This document shows positions 15,908 through 62,751 of a stretch of 64,000 nucleotides of DNA, piece by piece (the stretch's first letter is position 1; each line of letters begins with the position of its first letter). This DNA comes from Asterias rubens (taxonomy: Eukaryota): assembly GCF_902459465.1 (NCBI RefSeq), contig NC_047067.1:1612001-1676000 (forward strand). The letters run 5' to 3'. The notes under the pieces were generated by a model. The model saw nothing but the letters and a program-made list of their open reading frames with translations. It was not told the DNA's origin and did not search any database. The position numbers and the translations under genes are program-made.

Positions 15908-17180
15908 GGAGCCATTCATAATTTTCAATGTTTTAACATTTCTTTTCGAATTAGTGGGTGGGTGGGTCAAAAGCCTCTTTTTCAAATATTTATTAATCGA
16001 AATTCACTTTATTTATTTATTTCTTGTTTATCCTGGGAAATCCATTCAGTAAGAAAAACTCACTGATCTCCCATGGATCCCAGCTAATAACAAACTACAG
16101 AAGTGAACTTAAGATAAAAATATTACAAATTTACACAGAAAAACATTGCACATTCATTTAAAAAAAGCACTAGATCCAAGCATACATACATTTTGAAAAC
16201 TACAAAAAACGTTTTTAAATAGGACGAATAAATTAAAAGGGGGAAAAATACATTAAAAAAAACTTCCATGGAGGTAGCAACTGCAGACCAAGCAAGTCTC
16301 ACGCTTTCACGCAACGCAACCATTTTCTCACGCTTAGGGCCGGACAGGGAAAACAAAATAAAATTCATAATGCACAATCTTCAGATTGCGCGCAGTTTTT
16401 CAGAATTATCAACTTGGGCTGGCTTACAAACAGAGCGCGAATTTGCATATTGCGCAGTCTTTTGCTCTCTCACCAGATTCAGCTGATAATTCTGAATTCG
16501 ACAGAGCGAAAAACGTGAATTGCGCACAAGTTTGTCTCAATCCGTTTTTAGCAAATTTTGTTGAATGCGCCCCACGTGCATAGACTCGACACATCAGGTA
16601 GAAGTCATGAGCGGAGGATTTTGCACATCATTTTAGCCGGAAACAATCGTACCTCCACATTAACCAGCAACATCTCCTGTATACCTCATGTGAATGTGAA
16701 GTAAACTGAAAAGTTTTTTCATGCATTTTGAAGAAAAGAAATCCTCCACACACAAAAATTCTGCACAATTTTTGTATTTAGCCTATTTTTTTCCTTCCCC
16801 AGGGAGCAAGTTTTTTTTTTTTCGGGCGGCGACACCGTTAATTTAAAAATCTAAGGGATAGCTGTCCACTGTTGAACTTGGCACCGATCTTCACGGGTTT
16901 CGGTCACAATGAAAGTTGATAAAAGTTTTAGCCCAGGGCTGAAATAACTGGGCCTGCGGTCCGGTGCTAGGCCCGAATGTGCAACATCCATGATGCAGCG
17001 CACAATGGTACAAGTACCATGCAAGTAATATGCATAATGCAATCCACATGTAGCTTTATTTTTAATACTGCACATAACAAATCAATGTTTTTATAATCGA
17101 AATTAGGGGTGGGTGGGTGGGTCAAAAATCTTTGGAAAAGAAATCGAAATTTTAAAACATTGAAAATTATGAATGGCCCC
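15908..17180. mobile_element. 1.27-kb non-autonomous DNA transposon with ~27-bp TIRs and a TAA TSD (Zator- or Harbinger-like)
   Basis: The ends read taa|ggagccattcataattttcaatgtttt ... aaaacattgaaaattatgaatggcccc|taa. A gggtgggtgggtcaaaa direct repeat sits near both ends. Confidence 0.8.
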
Positions 17181-17713
17181 TAAGCCCCCCACCGCCTCCC
17201 CTCACCGACCATTCCCAAAGCCAGCCGGACCGTCAACTTTTGTTTCCTACCTAATTCGGCCTCAGCCATTTGTCAAAAAGGCCTTCCTTGTTAAGTCATA
17301 ATCATTATACCCTGAGCATTTCCATCATGAAAACTTTGGCATAATTTGTAGTGATTATGCCTGGGTGATGTTATCAGCCAATTAGCTCGTCTGCAATCCA
17401 TTCATGGAATCGGAGGTCTGCGGTCTCACGGTCTAATGCCCCAGACGATCGCCCAGACAGGTCACAAGGTCAAAATGAATCCAGCCGTACTCAGTATGGC
17501 ACCCCGACTCAAGCAAATCATTCACACATGATTACTAGTGGGGACAACACAGCAGCGAGTGTGGGTCACCTGACGATGGCTTGCAAGGCACGTTGAAAAA
17601 GTGTACATGCACCCTAAAAATAGCCGGTCAAAAAAACGAGTGAAAACCGAAGTACTTTGTAGGACTTTGACATTTCACTCTATGCATTCAAGAGGAGAAG
17701 GCTCGTCACAGAG

Positions 17714-20700
17714 ATGGCACGATTTATATTAACTCTCGTGAGACAGTAAGTTGATTAATTAATGTTTGCATGAACCCTGCCCTTGTGCCGCTTGACTGAG
17801 GCCTATCCTATTTATATAGCGGAGAAGGGCTTTTTTGGGGTGGGGGTGAGAGGCTGAAGCCTCGGCTAGCTCAGCTGGGTTGGTGTGCGTCTGCATGCTC
17901 GCACTCTCATCATCCAAGTACTGAGCTGAGCAGATGCCATGCATGATCATGCATGTGTTGTATATCAGCTTCTTTTTGGGGGTGGGGGTGAGAGGCTGAA
18001 GCCTCGGCTAGCTGGGTTGGTGTGCGTCTGCATGCTCGCACTCTCATCATCCAAGTACTGAGCTGAGCAGATGCCATGCATGATCATGCATGTGTTGTAT
18101 ATCAGCTGGTGTGGGAAATTCTTAGCTGCACTGACCTAGGCCTATTCAATAGCAATCATGTGCAAAAAAAATATATATTAATGTTAAACCTTTTTTTTTT
18201 TTTTTAAGATGTAAATTAAACTTGAATGTTTCAATGTTTGCTTACATTATTTTAAAGTCTCTTTTTTTTTTCTGTACCGAAAGTGTCCAATAAGTGTAAA
18301 GCCATTGGACCCTTTTGGTAAAGAGTATTGCCCAAGTCCCACTCTTCGTGTATCACAACTTACATATAAAATAAAAAACCTGTGAAAATTTACTCTCAAT
18401 CGGTCATCGGTGTCAGGAGAAAATAACCCACCCTTGTATCCGCACGTTTCGCCGTGTCATGACATGTGTTTAAAATAAATCCGTAATTCTCGATATCGAG
18501 AATTGATATTGTTTTAATGTTTTCTCATAAAGTAAAGCATTGGACACTTTCAGTACAGAAAAAAAAAAAAAGTTCACAGATTTACAAATAACTTGCAGGG
18601 TTTACAGAAGGTAACGGTGAAAGACTTCTCTTGAAATATTATTCCATGAAATGCTTTACTTTTTGAGAAAACATTAAAACAATATCAATTCTCGATATCA
18701 AGAATTACGGATTTATTTTAAACACATGTCATGACACGGCGAATTGTTCGGAAACAAGGGTGGGTTTTCCCGTTATTTTCTCCCGATTCCGATGACGGAT
18801 TGAGCCCAGGTTTGTTATTTTATATAGAAGTTGTGATAAACGAAGTGTGGGCCTTGGACAATACTGTTTACCGAAAGTGTCCAATGGCTTTAATCTTAGA
18901 CCATTAATATTATTATTTAAGTGTCTTTAAACTTCGAACAGATGCAAACATTATTTACAACCTTGGATGGTCGTTTAAACTTTAAAGACACTGGACACTA
19001 TATTGGTTTATAACACACCTCTTGCTCGTTCTGTATTCTGGTTGGCTGAAACATGGTCACATGGGATGAACTAATATAGGCTAGTGATCGCGGGCACGTG
19101 TTTTGCGGGAATAGTACCAGAGCGAGCAATAGTCTTTGAATATAGTGCAAAACAAATTTCCAAAACTCTTTTTTCTGTTCTTATTTTACATTTAAGACAG
19201 AGCTGTGCTATAAAACACATATTGACTGGCATAATTCGGTAACTAGTGTACGTCTATTCCCCCTCGGTCCTGTGAGTGACCAGAAAAGGGCCTATTTCCC
19301 TCGGCCTTCGGCCTCGGGAAATAGGTCGCTCTTCTGGTCACTCAAAGTCCCACGTGGGAATAGACGTATACTAATTACCTCGTTGCCAGTGTGTATAATA
19401 TGGTCGCGACATGGTTACTTTTATTATTTACTCCGCTCACACTTTTATTTGAGTTTCTCCCAAAAAAAGGATGAGCGGAGTTAATTAAGGAAGAATAATT
19501 AGCTGAGCGAGTTCAGAAAATTAGTTACTCTTTTTCCTCTTTAATTTGTTTATGTTTTACAGGAAAATGTTCATCCACTGCAGTAAACATTGTTAAACCT
19601 ACAACCGTTACAACATAGTTGGTTATTTTGTACAAAACAAAAAGTTCCATTCAAAAATTTCCGATCCCTAAAGAACTAGTCAAATAAGAAAACAACTTAA
19701 AAAGACAAACAATTAGCTTTGACATCAGAAACGGACGAAAAATACTTAAAGACAGTAGGCCTGGGTGAATTATTTGAATATCCGGTTAATGGCGAATAGG
19801 TTTTCCTATCCGTAACCGCGAATGCCTTTTTTTTCTTAACCGGATATCCGCATAGGGCGCTAATACCTATTTATAAACCGGATAGTTCTGTAATTACAAC
19901 CAAGTAACCGGATATTCTTTAATATCCGAATATCCGCAGACGTCGGGCGACAACTGATATGAATGTTTTGTCTGAATCCTTATGAAACCTCTATTAAGAC
20001 AGCATAAAACAGCATAAATTAAGTATTTAACTATGCTCACATCCGTAAAGAGTTAAAACAATGACATTTCCGACGTATTTTGTTCAAAGATTACAAAAGT
20101 TTTCCTTCACCCAGAGTCAATCAAGATCAAAAGAAAAAGCAAATCACCATCTTTAAATTAGATTCGGTCATTTTTATGAATGAACCGAGTGACACTGTCT
20201 AAAACTAATATCAATCCGCCCATAAGATCTCATTCACAAACGAACAGCGCCCTCTAGCAGCAAAAAAAATGTGCTCTCTAGCGGCGAAAAAACTATTTGA
20301 ATATCCGGTTAATTTCGAATAGTTGGCCAGCGGTATCCGAAAAGCAAAATTTCACTATTTGCCCAGCACTAAAAGACAGCAACTTCAGGAAGATTATTTT
20401 TGAATATAATTCTTAAAAACTGCACACCTAATACCAAAGTAGTGAATTAGCGTACGAGTTGGTTGGATAAACATGGTTTTGTGCACACTAATTGCCAAGT
20501 AATATTGTGTAAAAATGTTTTTTTTTTAGTTTCAAGAATCAACTGATTATACATTTTGTGCATACGACACTAGTACAAAGTACATTCTGGTCAAACTTCT
20601 CCATAATACTGCTTTGGCGTGTTGCTTTTTATGTTACCTATCGTTTGTAAGCTGCCATAGTGAGTTATTGGAGCGTTAACTGGCCCTGCGTTTTGAGGCT

Positions 20701-51967: not shown

Positions 51968-54900
51968 CTACAACATATGAGAGAAGTGTTTATCGTACAC
52001 TGTGAAATGATGTTTCCTCATGTCTTGAAGATGTTGTTTTTTATCCTTGAGGGATGTCTTGATGTCATCGATGATGGAATTGGTCAGATCATGTAGGGCT
52101 ATATTTGTACCCGTTGTACACTGCAATTGGTATTGCTGGGGTGTGACCCTCTGGCAGTAGGTTTCTGTAATAAGACGAAATCAAGTTTTGAGGAAATATA
52201 CTTTGGTTTGCTGCATTAGATGATCTTCCCGTCAAGTGAACTCGGCAAACTCCCACAAAGGGATATAAACACCAAGCTGGCAACAGCCAATCTCTCTCAT
52301 TATACAAATATTGGTTTAATGCCTATGATTACGAATTGCACACATCAAGAAATTGTGATTGAGTAACTAGACGACAATACTTATTCTAGTCGTGAAATCA
52401 GTTCAAACCCTAAACCTTGTGATTGCAAGTTCTGCGATCTAACCGCTAGCTTTTTCCCTTGTACTGCTGCACTTTGGAACTACTTCCCTGTAATTACATC
52501 ATCTTCAAATCTATCCCAGTTCAAGAGGTATGTGAACAAAGTACCTTCTCTCTCTCTTTAAATTGTCTTGTTTTCTTGTAGCCTTTGTGTTGGGCGACTT
52601 AAAAAAAAAAATATATATATAGTTTAACAAAATATGTAAATATTTTGTGAATTTGTTGTGGCACTACGAGTCGGAATACCAACCTAAACTGATGTCTTTG
52701 AGTCCTGCCTTCAATCGTGCTATTCTGATCTTTGCTGCCTCCTCAACAAGTTGTGGAATCTTGAAGATTCTATCGTTACAATCCACCATGAAGGAGACCA
52801 AGTTCTTCTCTTGGACTGGGGTCACTACTTGACTTGGAATGATCAGCGATGTAAAAGTTGTAATGAGTGTGATTCGGTTGTCCGTCTATTAAGAATGGGG
52901 GAAGGTTGAATGATTTTGAAAATGAATAATCTGACATCGGTTTTGTTGTTTGATTGTCTTTCTCGTGGATCAAGCATATGTTTTAATATAAAATATTTTG
53001 ATTTTAGGTTACAGATTTGTAATTTTAAGTTTAGTTTAGATTAACCATCCTACTGTTTGACCATTCAATATCATCCACTGTGGTTTTGAATTTTTAAACT
53101 ATGCCAGCCTGCAGTATGATACCACATGGTAAATGCATCTACGCAGAACACAACCAACCCTCCTACAGTCAAAACAGTCGATATCATCCACTGTGGTGTC
53201 AGCATGCATATGATATCGTAATTTGTGAAACGTCATCATCTTTAGGGATCAGATTGGCTCAGTGAATTCTTTCCCTGTCTTTCACCTCTGTGGACCCCGG
53301 TTCCAATCCCACCTCAGACCGAAGCCTTGCATGTGGATTTGGTTTTCGGTCTCTACGTGATTTTCCCCCTTGGGGTTTCCTGTTCATCATGTTCTTGGCG
53401 CTAATTTTGCTGTTGGATGTGTAATCAAATAAAAGGGTTTGTAATCTTCATGACTGCATACCTCATAGCTCAGTTTCACAGCATTCTTAGTGCTTGCCGC
53501 ACTCATGAATCCCAGCAACCTCTTCAGTTCATCTCGTTCCTTCTTCCCAACAATCAACATCATCACCTGTGTCAACTCAATGGCTCTCGTTGTCTTCCCT
53601 CGAGCGAGAGAACCCAAGATGGCCGACAAGACCTCATGGAGATCAGCTGGGATCAAGTGATGTTTCCTCCCAGCGTAGTGATTGGTCAGAGTCTGGAAGA
53701 GGAGTAATTTGCGTGCATGAACCGAGGACTGTGATTGGCTGTTGGTGCTACTAAGGAAGCTGGCTGCTATTGAAGCGCCCTCTGGGTGTGAGTGAAGACA
53801 AGCAATGGCGGACGAGAACCAAGGATCACTGCTGGAAATTATCAAATAAAACACATCTATTATGTTTCTTGAATAATGATTTGGGTTAAACAAATTGACT
53901 ACCAACTAAGCTATCCAGCCCTATGTTGGCAGTCTCCCTATTAGTCAATATCTTTGTTCGGGGGTGCCAGTCAGAAGCAATACAACAGTTAACTGCCGCA
54001 TAGCAGTTATGATTTGGGTTAGACAAATTGACTGGAGCAGGACTTGAACCAATGAACTCCATATTACTGTATCAAAGCTCTACCAACTAAGCTATCCAGC
54101 CCTATGTTGGCAGTCTCCCTATTAGTCAATATCTTTGTTTGGGGTGCCAGTCAGAAGCCATACAACAGTTAACTGCCACATAGGCTAGCCAGGGATCACC
54201 AAGTTTTTTATACAACCTCGGAAGTGGCAGCCAAGGGATCACCTTAAGGAAATGTGACTTTTCTTAATACTGTGGGGGGCAATAAGTCGCTCTCGGGAAG
54301 TGAACTTTGTCAAGTTGATGACAAGACTGCAGTATTAAAGAGAATTTGATTGGTAACTTACCCCGTGGTGTCATCTTTGATTGTGTTTCCATTCGCTAAA
54401 CTCTCTCCGATATCGTTTCTAGCTTCAAACTTTTCTGTGCAGCTTAAAATGTCCTCTAGAAGGGGTAAGTCCACTAATTGCAACAGCCTCTGTACTGTAG
54501 ACTCCTTCCAGATCTGATTCAAATCTTTGAATAAACAACAATTATAAAAAACCATCAAAAAACAAATAATAAAATTTAAAAACATTCAACAACCCTCCCC
54601 ATAGGTGGTGCTACTACAAGCCACATGCCGATTTATTAAGAAAGATATAATAAAAATCACATATGAAAGTTTCAGTTGGATTCAGTTGTCTACTTGTTGA
54701 GAAAAAGCAAACAATTATTTTATGTTGAATTCATCCTTGTTGACAGCGGATACTAGTCACATCTCTGGCTTCAGTACAACCCAACTCAAATAAGATTTTT
54801 CACATGGTGCTACCACAAACCTCACCTGATTATTATGAATTACTCTTATAATGAGATGTTTTATTTTTCAAATATCCTTTGAAATAATTGCTCTTTAAAT

Positions 54901-57900
54901 GAATTCTGTTCACAAATTTTCATCTCTAACTTGATTCCGTTGCTATCTGACTTGTTTTCCCCACACTTTACCGTTCCTGCAATTTCCTAACAAAACTCAC
55001 CGATATCATCTCTACTGCTCGTCTTTGATCTAGTCAACCGAACTGATGCCCTATCACAGTAAATATTCACATCGCTGCTCCTGCTACTTGTTGATTTAGT
55101 GTCAACTTGGGAGGATTCTGATGTTACACTCGCCGTCTCTACGTCCTTATTTCTGATTTTAAAAACAAAAATTAATTTCAACATAAAAAGGGTTTTCAGG
55201 GTTCTTTTTGTGGCAAGTGCTGTTTGTTATGTTGATGAAATCAACTGTATTTTGAAGCAGGAGAAACCGTGGATAAGGTGCCTCCAGACCATTCAACCCC
55301 ATTGTCTGAACATCCAAGAAGGAAATGACTAGCAACTTGTCTTTGCCTTCACCTTTTCCAAGAGATATCCCCTTTTTAGTCTGCCTCATTCAATAATTAA
55401 TTACTTTCTCTTCCTTTTCCCACCTTTGACTTTGTCTTTTGTGTTTCCAACCTCTTGTTGTTAAACCAGCCCTTTCCCTGGACCCCCTTATCTCCTTCAT
55501 TGTTCATTCCTTGCTTTTTTGGTGTGCTTTCTACCTCCCTCTCATTTTTGTCCATTTGATTGCTCCTTTTACACCAGTACACCTTTTTATGTGTGTTGTC
55601 ATTTAACCTTGAGAAAGACTCTACTAGAAACATCAGGCCATTAACTCTCTTGTGCATTTAAACCAGTTTTGTAAATATGACTCAGGTTTTCTTTTATGAA
55701 AGTAATTCTTGTGACTACTGACTTGACTTCTGTTCGCTTCCCAAGTCGAAAACTTCCGATACTCCGACGACTCTTTTTACGCTCTGGCAGGGATCCTTGA
55801 GAATCAAGATCTCCGCATCTTAAGTGAAAATAAAAAGATGTTTGATGTTTTGTGGAAAAGAAGGCATGATATAAAACAATGAGGGACAGAGTTGACTTCA
55901 GGGCTCGAACTTGTGGGCAAAATTCAGAAGACTGCAGGATTTGTAGCTTAGAATCTTTACTTGACTGGGATTTTATTTACAAGACAATGAAAAGAGACTA
56001 AAATCAAAACGAGAACCAGTTGTATGATCTGAACTGTTTACACCAAGATAATTTTGTATGTCTTCTGTTTTAAGGGTGGTACTCTACAGGATTGAAAGAT
56101 GTTTGTGATACTCGAGCTCAACACTTGAACTTCATTCTTTTAAGACAAAATTTTGAATTTAAAATTACAAGACCACCAGACTTGTCCTGCCTTTCGCTTA
56201 CTGGCCCAACAGTAAAATCACCCGGAGGTAAAATCTGAGCCCCTGTGACTTGGAGATGAAGAAACAGGAAAGGGTTTGGGAGATTGCGACTCCCTAATGG
56301 CTAAATGGATCAGAGTCAAACAGAACTCAACTTACTTCGGTTCAAATTTTTGTCTTGAGAGTCTGAAACTTGCTCTTAGCTTGTCTCCGGATCGAGGGAT
56401 GTTTTCAAGAGATCCACTGATATTGTAACTGAAGATTGTAAAACAACAAAATTTGTAACAATTCAAATATACCCAGCAGGGAACAATTTCGTCCAGCAGT
56501 TATTGCATAGGTAAATATTAAGACTGGTTAAATTTTGTGTACAATAATGGTAAACATTGAGTAGCAAAAGATGATTTTTTTAGAAGTAATTTATACATTT
56601 TGCATTGCAGTTTGCTATAAAAGGGAAATCTTTCGATGACCAGTTGCCATTTATTACGGTTCCGAGGACTGGATTATTTACATGCATCCCATGAAAGGAA
56701 ATTTAGTTATATCTCACAAACATTTAAGATATTACTATTCGTGTTGCCACGTCTTGCATGACATCAATTAGCTCACCTCCCCTCTGGTTTTAGTTTTCCG
56801 AGTCCAAAGCTGTTTCGTTTTCTCTTCTTTTTCTCAAGGGGTGTATCTGATGGGTTTCCTTCAGTCATTCTGTTGCAATAGGGACGAGGAAAGAGAACAA
56901 GGAAAAAATATAGACAAAGGATTGTTGTTATATGTACTGAAGATTGTCTGCTGTTAAAAGTAAGATTGACGTCAGATAAAGAATGATACACTACTTGGTG
57001 ATAGGGTTGTCGTTGTAGTCAGCAAAACAAATTAATTATGCACTTTGGTTTCAAAATTATGAGTTTTTGTACTCAAATGGTAGGATAGCATCTTTCAACA
57101 AGAACATTTTTTAATCAAAGCAAAACTGTAAAATAAAAGGTCATACCTAGGTAATCCATCTGTTTTGAGTTTTCCAAGGCCGAAGCTTGCCCTCTTCCTT
57201 TTCTTGCGGTCAAACAAACCGGCAAAACCAGTTGCACCATCATTTTCATCACATCTAAATACAAAAACAAGTTACGTCAAAGACGTGTAAATCTTTACTT
57301 CAGACTAACAAACAAAATATATTCAGATAATTTTTACTTTATAAGTATCCATCAGAATTCATATTCATATGAATTTTATTATTTCTGAATTGCCAGTGTA
57401 ACCACCTTGACTTTCGCACAAAACTTGCACTGGTTTCGATGTTACTGAAACTGAAAAGCCAAGGCGGAAATTTATTCTTACCGATGTTCCATTTTTGACT
57501 TGCCAACACCAAAACTGCTCCTCAGTTTCTTCCTTCTGTCGAATGGAGAACTTTTCAAGATGTCATGGTCAATCGATCTGCATAACATAATCAATCCCAA
57601 CATCTCGTAACAATTTAAGAATACTCAGAAATACAAACTCCTGTTTATACCAAAAAGTGCCCGACTATTTTTTGCTCCTACAGCCTCAGTTAGGAGTAGA
57701 TTTTGGAATTAAAAATACTACTTAGTTCTGAAAAGAACTATTGCGCTTAATAACTACTGCCTGGTGAGGGGAGATAGGTAATCGACTGGGACTACTATTT
57801 TTGCCTAGTGAATTGAGGGGAATTCTTGTTATGCAGCAGAGTGAGCTCTGCATAATTGGTTCCAGATGGGGATTTAAAGTTTTAGGTATATTCCACAGTG

Positions 57901-60900
57901 ATCATTTATGCATTCTATTGTTTTAGTTTGTTAAGCTTCTTAGTGTCTTAAAGGCAGTGGACACTATTGGTAATTACTTAAAATAATTATTAGCATAAAA
58001 CCTTTCTTGGTGACAAGTAATGGGGATAGGTTGTTGGTATAAAACATTGTGAGAAACAGCTCCGTCTGAAGTGCCATAGTTTTCGAGAAAGAAGTAGTTT
58101 TCAACGAATTTGAGGTCTCGACCCCAAGTTTAGAATTTGAGGTCTCGAAATCAACCATCTAAACGCACCCAACTTCGTGTGACAAGGGTGTTTTCTTCTT
58201 TCATTATTATCTCGCAATTTTGATGACCGATTGAGCTCAAATTTTCACAGGTTAGTTATTTTATGCATATGTTGAGATACACCAACTGTGAAGGCTATTC
58301 TTTGACAATTACCAATAGTGTCCACTGCCTTTAAGGGCAAGCAATCTTATAGTGTAGGGTGAAACTTGTTACCTTTTCTCTGTTTGACTTCTTGACATCT
58401 GTGACAATTGATGGTCGAAATGACTATTGCTACGAGCTCTCTGTTCACTCCCAATTCTGTTCATGAGTTTTTAAAGAAAGAGTCTTAGAATTCACAATAA
58501 CTATACAGTCCCTGGTCTGAAATCTTGTTTTAGTCTCTACATGTAATTCTTTATTGAAATTATTAAAGCTGACACACTGAATCCGCTCAAATCCTTGTTG
58601 ATGGATTCATGGCTTGCTTGATCAGCATTCACTTAGATTGTTTTTTTAAATCATTTTACTGGGTCATCAAATTTGGTGAATCAAGTTTCCCCCAATCCAC
58701 CATTAAGGACTGCAACACCTTGCCCTGAATTTATGTCATCTCTAGTAAATCAATGGACACCTTTAAAGACCTCACTAAAAAACAAAGTTACTCCCTCCCT
58801 TTACCCTCCCATCCCATCCATACATTTTGCAAGCTGATGTGATGTGTCTTTTAAACATTTTTGTGCCAGCTTATTTAAAACAGTACAGAAGTTAAATTTA
58901 GTCAAAGAATTAAAGGTTTATCGATAGAAGACGGTAAAACCAAGCCCTCCAACCACATTGATACATTATCACAGCAGGCCTGTGGCTGTACATTGAATTG
59001 TGAACTCTCACCCAGTTACATCACAGGCGCGCTCTCCACAGATTTGATACAGAGGAGAGGGCCTGCACTTGCAGTCTGCTAACTAGGTGAGAAATCATAA
59101 TATAATTCCATGTACGCCGCAGGTCTGCTTTGAGCATGTCGACACAGCCCTTTAATATACAGTCAGTGAAAGTCTTAAAGTCCTAGGGTTAGGATTACTG
59201 TTAAAGTCGACCTGTGACAGGCCTGGAATTAAACACAGGCCACTGCCTGTAACCCTGGTCTTGGTGCCCCTTCCAAAACTTTCTCATAGAATGGAAGGGC
59301 CCTTTGCAAAACCAAAATGGCCTAGTCCTCTCATATATCAAATTGCAGGCCTGCTGTTATTACCTGTAGTAGCTTGCATTGTTGTCCTGGAAGACTGGTT
59401 TAGTGTTTATGGATTGCTGAGACTGAGACAAAACATCGTCAAATATACTCTGCTCCAGTAGTAACTGAAAGAAATTAGTTGTTGTTGGGAATTTGTTATG
59501 AAATTTATGGACAAGTTAAAATTGTGTGCAGTTACGGAAACTGAAGATATGATCAGTCAATCAATGGGAAACCTAAAATACATTATTTTTTTTTTTTTTT
59601 AAACAACTCAATGTTAGCAGCATCAATATTGAATTGAAGAATGTTTTCATTGAAAATGTTATAAAGAAAAATTTATAGTGTAAATTTGTACCTTTTTGTG
59701 AAACTTTCTTTCAACCATTTTCCTTTTTGTTTTTTTAGGGGAAATAAAGGGATGTTTTAAATAAAGTGCACTGTGTTCAGTGACGTAAGTTTTGTAGTTT
59801 AACCCTCCTATACTGTTTGACTATTTGTATATTACTCAACCGAATGTCATACAACTCGTCCGTCGGACAGCTCGTCCGTTCGGACAAATCGACAGTTCAG
59901 ACATTTCGACGGGAGGGTTAAACTACAAAACTTATGTCACTGAACACAGTGCACTTTAACATCCCTTTATTTCCCTCCAAAAAACAAAAAGGAAAATGGT
60001 TGAAAGAAAGTTTCACAAAAAGGACAACTCAACGGTTCAGACAACTCGACTTTGAGACAACTCGACGGATGGCCAAGTCCGACAGACGAGTTGTCTGGTC
60101 TCCACTCAACCATATCCACTGTTATTTTGTATGGGTAAAATTTTCAAATCAAAAGATTATTATCCAAAGTAAGACTTAGTCTTGAGTGACTGGAACATGC
60201 TCTTTGCAGCGATTCAACTGCACATACCTGACACAATTTGACTGCATTTTCTCTGGAAATGTCTCGCTCAAATCCACTCTGCTGTAAATATGGCAGTAGG
60301 ACATCTACAGCATTGGCTCCAGTGAAGCATCCTTCGTAACGCTTTGCCTTGTTCTTGTGGGGTTTTGTGTCTACGCTGTCTTGTAGATGTTTGATAATGC
60401 TGTTCCATCGCTGTGTGGCTCGAAATGGTCCATTCATCGTACCTGCGGCAGATTGAGTGTTAATAATTGCTGCAGTTAATTTGAAAAATAAAATGTGCAG
60501 CAACACAACAGGCCTGTTTACAGTGAGTATAGTTGCGATATTGTAACCCTCCATCCTCCCGGTAATCGCAGACCATTGGGAGGATGGATGTTACAATGGT
60601 CGCAGACCGCTGGGTTGGGAAGATTGAGGGTTTATGATTGTGAAAATGATTATGATTTTGAAAAATACTGAAACAGCTAGCCCCACTTTTGTTAATAAGA
60701 CTAAAGTTGGCCACATAAGTGGAAGTGGGATTTCTGAAATCAGTGATGTGATAATATTGAGTGATACTTAGAACCAGGGCAACGCAACTTTTGGTTGCGA
60801 TAATCGTGACCCATATCCTCCCAACGGTTAGCCGAGTTACGATTATCGCAATGAACAAGTTACAGTTACACAGCAAATTGTCTTCTTTTTTAAACAAAAT

Positions 60901-62346: not shown

Positions 62347-62751
62347 TTAAAGGCAGTGGACACTATTGGTAATTACTCAAAATGATTATATTAATTAGCA
62401 TAAAACCTTTCTTGGTGACGAGTTATAATGGGGAGAGGTTGATGGTATAATTAATAAAACATTGTGAGAACCGGCACCCTCTGAAGTGCCAAAGTTTTTG
62501 AGAAAGAAGTAATTTTCCACCAATTATTTTGTTTGAGACCTCAGATTTAGAACTTGAGGTCTCAAAATCAACCACCTAAACGCATACAACTTCGTGTGAC
62601 AAGGGTGTTTTTTTCTTTCATTGTTATCTCGCATGTTCGATGACCGATTGAGCTCATATTTTCACAGGTTTGTTATTATATGCATATGTTGAGATACACC
62701 AACTGTGAAGGCAAGTCTTTGACAATTACCAAAAGTGTCCACTGCCTTTAA
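62347..62751 (+). mobile_element. Family A MITE sharing its right TTAA with a family B element
   Basis: The junction reads ...gtgtccactgcctTTAAagcaattggacac... Confidence 0.9.

Follow-up and report, generated by a model that had tools for sequence, protein, structure and literature searches.

In a 64,000-nucleotide (nt) stretch of Asterias rubens DNA (contig NC_047067.1, positions 1,612,001 to 1,676,000; below, the window) we characterized a DEPDC7-like gene in which five tandem exons, lying between those for the DEP domain and those for the C-terminal domain, each encode one copy of a basic R-x-S-F motif whose Ser is a likely phosphorylation site. Sequence comparisons showed that this array was produced in the starfish lineage when one ancestral motif exon was duplicated in tandem, and that each copy is under strong purifying selection. 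The function that we favor, tentatively and by analogy, is that of a multivalent, phosphorylation-reversible polybasic anchor to membrane or cortex, of the MARCKS/Lgl type; we put its chances at a little short of even.

Organization of the gene

The five motif exons lie on the minus strand of the window, and each encodes one unit of the array: exon 5 (unit 1) at 57482-57577 (96 nt, residues 163-194), exon 6 (unit 2) at 57147-57254 (108 nt, residues 195-230), exon 7 (unit 3) at 56777-56869 (93 nt, residues 231-260 plus a split codon), exon 8 (unit 4) at 56336-56428 (93 nt, residues 261-292), and exon 9 (unit 5) at 55723-55818 (96 nt, residues 293-324). All have lengths that are multiples of three and the same phase (2-2) at both ends. 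In the minus-strand translation each is flanked by an acceptor AG plus a single exon base on its upstream side and by two split-codon bases plus a donor GT on its downstream side.

The complete gene has 14 coding exons, running from 61547 to 51971 on the minus strand. Its translation mapped residue for residue, with no gap, onto the 684-residue RefSeq protein XP_033628513.1 (P0046), named 'DEP domain-containing protein 7-like isoform X1' from Asterias rubens; this and other full-length relatives were obtained with phmmer, using the large downstream exon (exon 12) as the query. The five-exon gene model is already present in RefSeq. The original prediction had not recognized the array as described, which does not hold for the exons themselves, but among 134 papers mentioning DEPDC7 the 20 ranked highest have, in their titles and abstracts, nothing on echinoderms or on the array.

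Mapping of the protein placed the DEP domain in exons 2 and 3 (60228-60440 and 59364-59464, minus strand), an upstream linker segment in exon 4 (58373-58456, minus strand, 84 nt, phase 2-2), a Ser/Thr-rich linker after the array in exon 10 (55001-55152, minus strand, 152 nt, entering in phase 2 and leaving in phase 1), and the helical C-terminal TOE2_C/RhoGAP-like domain in exons 11-14 (51971-54525, minus strand). With exon 4 counted, introns 3 to 9 form a run of seven consecutive phase-2 introns. The Pfam scan identified the DEP domain (PF00610) at residues 54-135 of P0046 (E 9.7e-13; 48.3 bits, cut-off 32.7). The C-terminal assignment comes from the precomputed database annotation of PF27581 (TOE2_C) in P0046, P0003, P0045, and P0005, and from the phmmer search, in which exon 12 matched DEPDC7-named proteins of Ambystoma, fishes, Branchiostoma, and Lingula; the local Pfam scan produced no PF27581 match at E <=0.01, and the exon 12 open reading frame alone matched zero Pfam families. 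One relative, P0001, encoded on a 32-kb ENA contig, was 73% identical across exon 12.

An AlphaFold2 model based on a 23-sequence alignment had no secondary structure and a predicted local distance difference test (pLDDT) score below 50 for residues 139-372. Helices were modeled at 376-679 with pLDDT mostly 80-93, and the DEP domain was also modeled with confidence. According to this model, the array is a string of short linear motifs within a predicted disordered linker that extends from the DEP domain to the C-terminal domain.

Sequence of the motif units

The module is about 32 residues long, is encoded by one phase 2-2 exon, and is present five times in tandem. It opens with a spacer that is acidic or rich in Ser, and continues with the consensus [DE]-x-basic cluster-R-x-S-F-[G/R]-hydrophobic-G-[K/R]. 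When the units of three starfish were aligned, the Arg, Ser, and Phe were invariant (15/15 units), and an acidic residue preceded the basic cluster in all 15. After S-F came Gly or Arg, a hydrophobic residue, and Gly in 14/15 units, and then Lys or Arg. The 16-residue cores have net charges of +5 to +7 each, and the spacers before them −1 to −3. Within the cores, Phe plus Leu or Val stand beside basic residues and the Ser lies inside the cluster, with Phe at +1 and, in four of the five units, Arg at −2.

The core of unit 1 is D-R-R-K-K-L-R-S-S-F-G-V-G-K, and that of unit 2 is D-R-K-K-R-K-R-A-S-F-G-L-G-K. Unit 3 has an invariant D-T-P and then E-K-K-K-R-K-R-N-S-F-G-L-G; among nine starfish sequences, its invariant columns are D238, T239, P240, E242, and K243-R248. 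Unit 4 is divergent (core K-L-R-A-S-F-R-L-S-R), and unit 5 has a two-residue insertion ahead of S-F (core K-K-S-R-R-S-I-G-S-F-R-L-G-K-R). The five peptides given in the original prediction were all recovered where it had placed them, except that the third unit ends in Ser, from a split codon AG|T, and not in Arg.

The similarity of the units was evaluated by comparing local alignment scores with those of 500 composition-preserving shuffles. Units 1-3 were mutually alike (z 9.6-12.8; 0/500 shuffles reached the score), with unit 2 scoring z 11.0-12.8 when aligned with either of its neighbors, units 1 and 3, and all three resembled the single sea-urchin unit (z 7.7-11.4). The best match to the single Diadema unit was unit 1 (score 71, z 11.4). 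Units 4 and 5 were weaker (z 0.3-4.1), yet retained the R..S-F core. At the DNA level, exons 6 and 7 were the sole pair with detectable similarity (72% identity over 50 nt, family D1), and the introns of the array had zero residual similarity; because of this loss, we conclude that the duplications are old. Exon 4, which is of phase 2-2 and contains R-A-R-S-N-S-H-F, was considered as a degenerate sixth unit and rejected, being fast-evolving and having z <=1.0.

Origin of the array by exon duplication

Patiria miniata (locus L001) and Acanthaster planci (locus L003) have these five exons too, with order and phases unchanged. In a tree of the units, copies clustered by position and not by species, with clade support of 91/88 for unit 3, 98/99 for unit 4, and 82/90 for unit 5; the three unit 2 copies were unresolved. 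Because the units cluster by position, the array must be older than the split between Forcipulatida (Asterias) and Valvatida (Patiria, Acanthaster), and the copies have not been homogenized since. Unit 1 clustered with the sea-urchin units (support 84/91) and is probably the ancestral copy.

The outgroups sampled were sea urchins, an acorn worm, a crinoid, amphioxus, and vertebrates, brittle stars and sea cucumbers being outside the sample. Diadema has one motif exon (87 nt, phase 2-2), as does the acorn worm Ptychodera (111 nt, phase 2-2), and the proteins of S. purpuratus and Lytechinus have one unit each. The crinoid Anneissia has a single degenerate motif, R-K-R-H-S-I, and amphioxus and the sampled vertebrates have zero units. 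Linker length followed a similar course: 243-245 residues in starfish (244 in A. rubens), 138-143 in sea urchins, about 100 in the crinoid and the acorn worm, and 73-99 in the sampled vertebrates. The lengths given in the original prediction, about 60 residues in human and about 240 here, were close to these measurements. When the array region alone was searched against 5.8 billion proteins, the matches were three starfish clusters only, and zero unrelated proteins (376-1197 residues) had a detectably similar array.

These comparisons showed that a single ancestral motif exon, duplicated in tandem, gave rise to the array, as had been proposed, with one phase 2-2 motif exon in outgroups and five at conserved positions in starfish. 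By the same sequence evidence, the duplications took place after the starfish/sea-urchin split and before that of Forcipulatida from Valvatida. The presence of a single motif in sea urchins and acorn worms, with its loss in the sampled chordates, suggests that a regulatory site existed here before the array.

In the sea-urchin orthologues (Diadema locus L002, region 17129-20234; further proteins P0065 and P0067), the unit exon is flanked by up to two further R-R-x-S-hydrophobic sites (one or two in the S. purpuratus and Lytechinus proteins), a cluster of basophilic-kinase sites with no multiplication of exons. One extra site spans the exon 4/5 junction (for example, K-R-R-A-S-I), and another opens the following exon, where S. 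purpuratus and Lytechinus have R-R-A-S-L and Diadema has H-R-A-S-L.

Selection on the array

Nonsynonymous and synonymous changes were counted by the Nei-Gojobori method on codon alignments built from the loci. Between Patiria and Acanthaster, the ratio of nonsynonymous to synonymous substitution rates (dN/dS) was 0.062 for array exons 5-9 (151 codons), compared with 0.113 for the DEP domain (101 codons), 0.142 for the C-terminal domain (293 codons), and 0.144 for exon 10 (49 codons). Single units of 28-34 codons had values of 0.016-0.073, the lowest for unit 3 (0.016) and the highest for units 4 and 5 (0.073 each). Because synonymous sites were saturated between Asterias and the valvatids, the proportion of nonsynonymous differences (pN) was compared instead; it was 0.11 for the DEP domain, 0.19 for the array, 0.22-0.25 for the C-terminal domain, 0.37 for exon 10, and 0.47-0.50 for exon 4. 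Thus, by these codon comparisons, constraint on the array matches that on the folded domains and far exceeds that on the neighboring linker segments, and the purifying selection on the motif that the original prediction had called for is strong.

We also considered whether the array might be functionless in itself, a neutral, low-complexity growth of a disordered linker. The region is indeed predicted to be disordered, and the vertebrate orthologues do without it. Against this, pN for the array was about half that of the neighboring linker exons, dN/dS was below that of the folded domains, the R, S, and F were invariant in 15/15 units, and five positional units have been kept in two starfish superorders. 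We give neutral growth almost no credence.

In the human genome, phase-symmetric exons with a length divisible by three are associated with protein disorder (PMC3632108), and the starfish array fits this general pattern. It differs from the pattern in being lineage-restricted, in having a dated single-copy ancestor, and in the unusually strong constraint on each copy.

Transcripts and splicing

Two RNA contigs that carry the same species label as the window, one from run X1 (2710 nt) and one from run X2 (1069 nt), had the exact limits of exons 5-9 and ran from each of these exons into the next and on into exon 10. The spliced transcripts required by the original prediction were therefore present at exactly the predicted junctions, and its description of five exons of 93-108 nt, all of phase 2-2, was confirmed. 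In both contigs, the exon 5 piece was separated from the exon 3 piece by an 84-letter stretch equal in length to exon 4; exon 4 is placed in the contigs by this gap length.

The original prediction went further and proposed that the five exons are cassettes, with alternative splicing setting the number of units by tissue. Exons 4-9 are all of phase 2-2 and multiples of three, so that any subset could be skipped in frame, and depth on the gene in the raw reads (two 2026 RNA-seq runs, X7 and X8) was <1x, which leaves minor isoforms below sight. Skipping of a unit was not seen: 2/2 independent transcript contigs carried all five exons, although contigs hide rare variants and, at a raw depth of <1x, rare or tissue-specific skipping could escape. 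None of eight RefSeq isoforms from three species (A. rubens, A. amurensis, and Acanthaster) omitted a unit; they varied solely at the N-terminus, at a single NAGNAG serine where exon 12 begins, and in the last exon or C-terminus. In addition, the units are positionally orthologous and each has a dN/dS in the range expected of constitutive exons. This constraint on every unit argues for constitutive use of exons 5-9. The tuning of unit number by splicing was thus not borne out within the limits of this depth, and we regard it as improbable, with roughly the standing of a long shot.

Two differences among isoforms were observed outside the array. In A. rubens and in A. amurensis, what distinguishes isoform X1 from X2 is a single Ser before D-P-W, at about 53828-53833, consistent with a NAGNAG tandem acceptor. 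Isoforms X1 and X3 of Patiria (L001 16011-16067) and Acanthaster (L003 12497-12553) have an alternative last exon, in which a Lys-rich tail ending in T-x-K-K-K replaces the conserved Y-D-K-x-F-x-x-M-L; no such tail was seen in the Asterias models. For Acanthaster, isoform X1 took the place of X2 in our comparisons.

Candidate functions of the array

Both readings offered for the motif in the original prediction, a nuclear localization signal (NLS) and a basophilic-kinase or MARCKS-like switch, are plausible at the level of sequence pattern only. We favor the membrane anchor because the units share the layout of the phosphorylation-reversible basic-hydrophobic membrane motifs of MARCKS, Lgl, Numb, and Miranda. 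Polybasic patches bind the acidic inner leaflet, and phosphorylation inside a patch releases the protein from the plasma membrane; atypical protein kinase C (aPKC) neutralizes the polybasic domains of Lgl, Numb, and Miranda in this way, as protein kinase C (PKC) does that of MARCKS (PMC6020718). Those patches and the starfish units are alike in being short, unstructured stretches of Lys and Arg with Phe or Leu and with Ser in a PKC-like context. The starfish protein differs in having one Ser per patch, five patches, acidic spacers between them, and an exon for each. We therefore treat the resemblance to MARCKS as one of functional analogy and not of family membership, and the starfish switch as a prediction.

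In such an anchor, the five basic patches would reinforce the membrane binding of the DEP domain with an avidity of their own for the cortex or the acidic inner leaflet. Phosphorylation of the five serines by a basophilic kinase of PKC/aPKC, protein kinase A (PKA), or Aurora type would then bring about stepwise release. The number of units would set both the affinity and the steepness of the switch, and would do so through evolution rather than through splicing. PKC isozymes reportedly (Nishikawa et al. 1997) prefer a hydrophobic residue such as Phe at +1, together with basic residues at −2, −4, and −6. Units 1-3 match this pattern in full, and units 4 and 5 match it in part.

What is known of the DEPDC7/TOE-2/LET-99 family is of the same kind. 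Its members have the same domain order, a DEP domain and then the helical, degenerate RhoGAP-like TOE2_C domain, both of them conserved between starfish and vertebrates, and in asymmetric divisions they are found at the cortex or membrane; the starfish protein is distinguished by its longer linker with five motif exons, the sampled vertebrates having no unit. Mouse DEPDC7 is a plasma-membrane protein in oocytes, anchored by its DEP domain, and polarizes to the actin cap in a Ran-GTP-dependent manner upstream of CDC42-NWASP-ARP2/3 (PMC13457618). TOE-2 of C. elegans is asymmetrically cortical in neuroblast divisions (PMC11125515), and PAR-3, PAR-1, and the 14-3-3 protein PAR-5 restrict LET-99 to a band of the cortex (PMC5576900).

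Several points weigh against the anchor. Phosphorylation, membrane binding, and localization of echinoderm DEPDC7 are at present predictions from sequence pattern, and the motif fits several basophilic kinases as well as a classical NLS, among which sequence alone cannot choose. There is no homology to MARCKS, and the Pfam scan of P0046 identified the DEP domain only. The portions available of the supplementary tables of two Patiria oocyte phosphoproteomes (PMC8370769, PMC12542822) contained no peptide of DEPDC7 or of a unit, which is not evidence of absence. Finally, because vertebrate DEPDC7 works at the membrane without an array, the array is accessory and not the core mechanism.

The units might instead act chiefly as classical NLSs for importins. 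The protein would then be nuclear, or masked by importin, in interphase and set free at high Ran-GTP, and the binding of importin would be gated by phosphorylation of the Ser next to the signal and of the invariant Thr-Pro that precedes unit 3. By pattern match, K-K/R-x-K/R strings are present in units 1, 2, 3, and 5, and the K-K-K-R-K of unit 3 is the string of the simian virus 40 (SV40) large-T type of NLS. Unit 4, however, has no such pattern and yet is constrained like the other units. One good NLS would also suffice, which leaves unexplained both the five copies and their invariant S-F-[G/R]-hydrophobic-G tail. The evidence from the family is divided as well. The Ran-GTP route by which mouse DEPDC7 polarizes at the cortex is unexplained in PMC13457618, where neither an importin nor an NLS is mentioned, but that protein is membrane-bound; a TOE-2 transgene made from complementary DNA collected in interphase nuclei, but endogenously tagged TOE-2 was not nuclear (PMC11125515). 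A precedent is provided by anillin, a cortical scaffold whose C-terminal basic NLS makes its recruitment sensitive to importin and to the Ran-GTP gradient around chromatin (PMC5683762, PMC7353161), much as the polarization of mouse DEPDC7 depends on Ran-GTP. The parallel is limited, in that DEPDC7 proteins are not known to bind importin and those of mammals have no array. We consider a chiefly nuclear-import role unlikely, though it is the main rival of the anchor; it would be compatible with membrane binding if importin and lipid competed for the basic patches.

The units could also be phospho-dependent docking sites for proteins such as 14-3-3, as has been proposed for LET-99 and PAR-5, or a multisite kinase substrate or scaffold, and so work by binding proteins and not by lipid electrostatics. 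The invariant R-x-S context, with its conserved F, G/R, hydrophobic residue, G, and K/R, resembles a specific recognition motif more than mere charge. Mode I and II 14-3-3 sites typically have Pro at +2, which the units do not, and no partner is known for these sequences. In the family, PAR-1 and the 14-3-3 protein PAR-5 are required to keep LET-99 out of the posterior cortex (PMC5576900, citing Wu et al. 2016). We judge docking to be decidedly unlikely.

A combination of these roles would make each unit dual-purpose, binding either importin or the acidic plasma membrane, and the array a multivalent coincidence sensor. The protein would then attach to the oocyte cortex only where Ran-GTP from the chromatin strips away importin and a basophilic kinase is inactive. 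We assign this possibility the same low likelihood as docking. If it were true, the array would supply the missing link from Ran-GTP to the cortical polarization of DEPDC7 described for mouse oocytes, in a form that is amplified and easy to dissect.

Repeats in the introns of the gene

Intron 4 contains a dispersed repeat of about 390 nt (57948-58334), with a second copy at about 62365-62751, some 4.4 kb away; the copies are 88-91% identical over 72 and 215 nt. RNA reads covered the 57948-58334 repeat to >1000x, swamping the read-junction counts of the raw RNA-seq runs X7 and X8. Because most of these reads ran into unlike sequence, we conclude that the repeat is a multi-copy element carried by numerous transcripts; it had zero matches in Rfam. 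Intron 2 contains a 66-nt inverted repeat (59691-59756 and 59958-60023), with arms that are 95% complementary and 201 nt between them.

Significance of the array

Starfish oocytes are a classic system for polar-body extrusion. In 2026, mouse DEPDC7 was shown to be the Ran-GTP-responsive membrane scaffold that builds the oocyte actin cap for this process (PMC13457618). The five-fold motif of the starfish protein would offer a mutable handle on charge, phosphorylation, and possibly importin in the cortical targeting of DEPDC7. The array is also a clean, datable case in which a phase-symmetric exon carrying a short linear motif was multiplied and the motif then frozen by selection.

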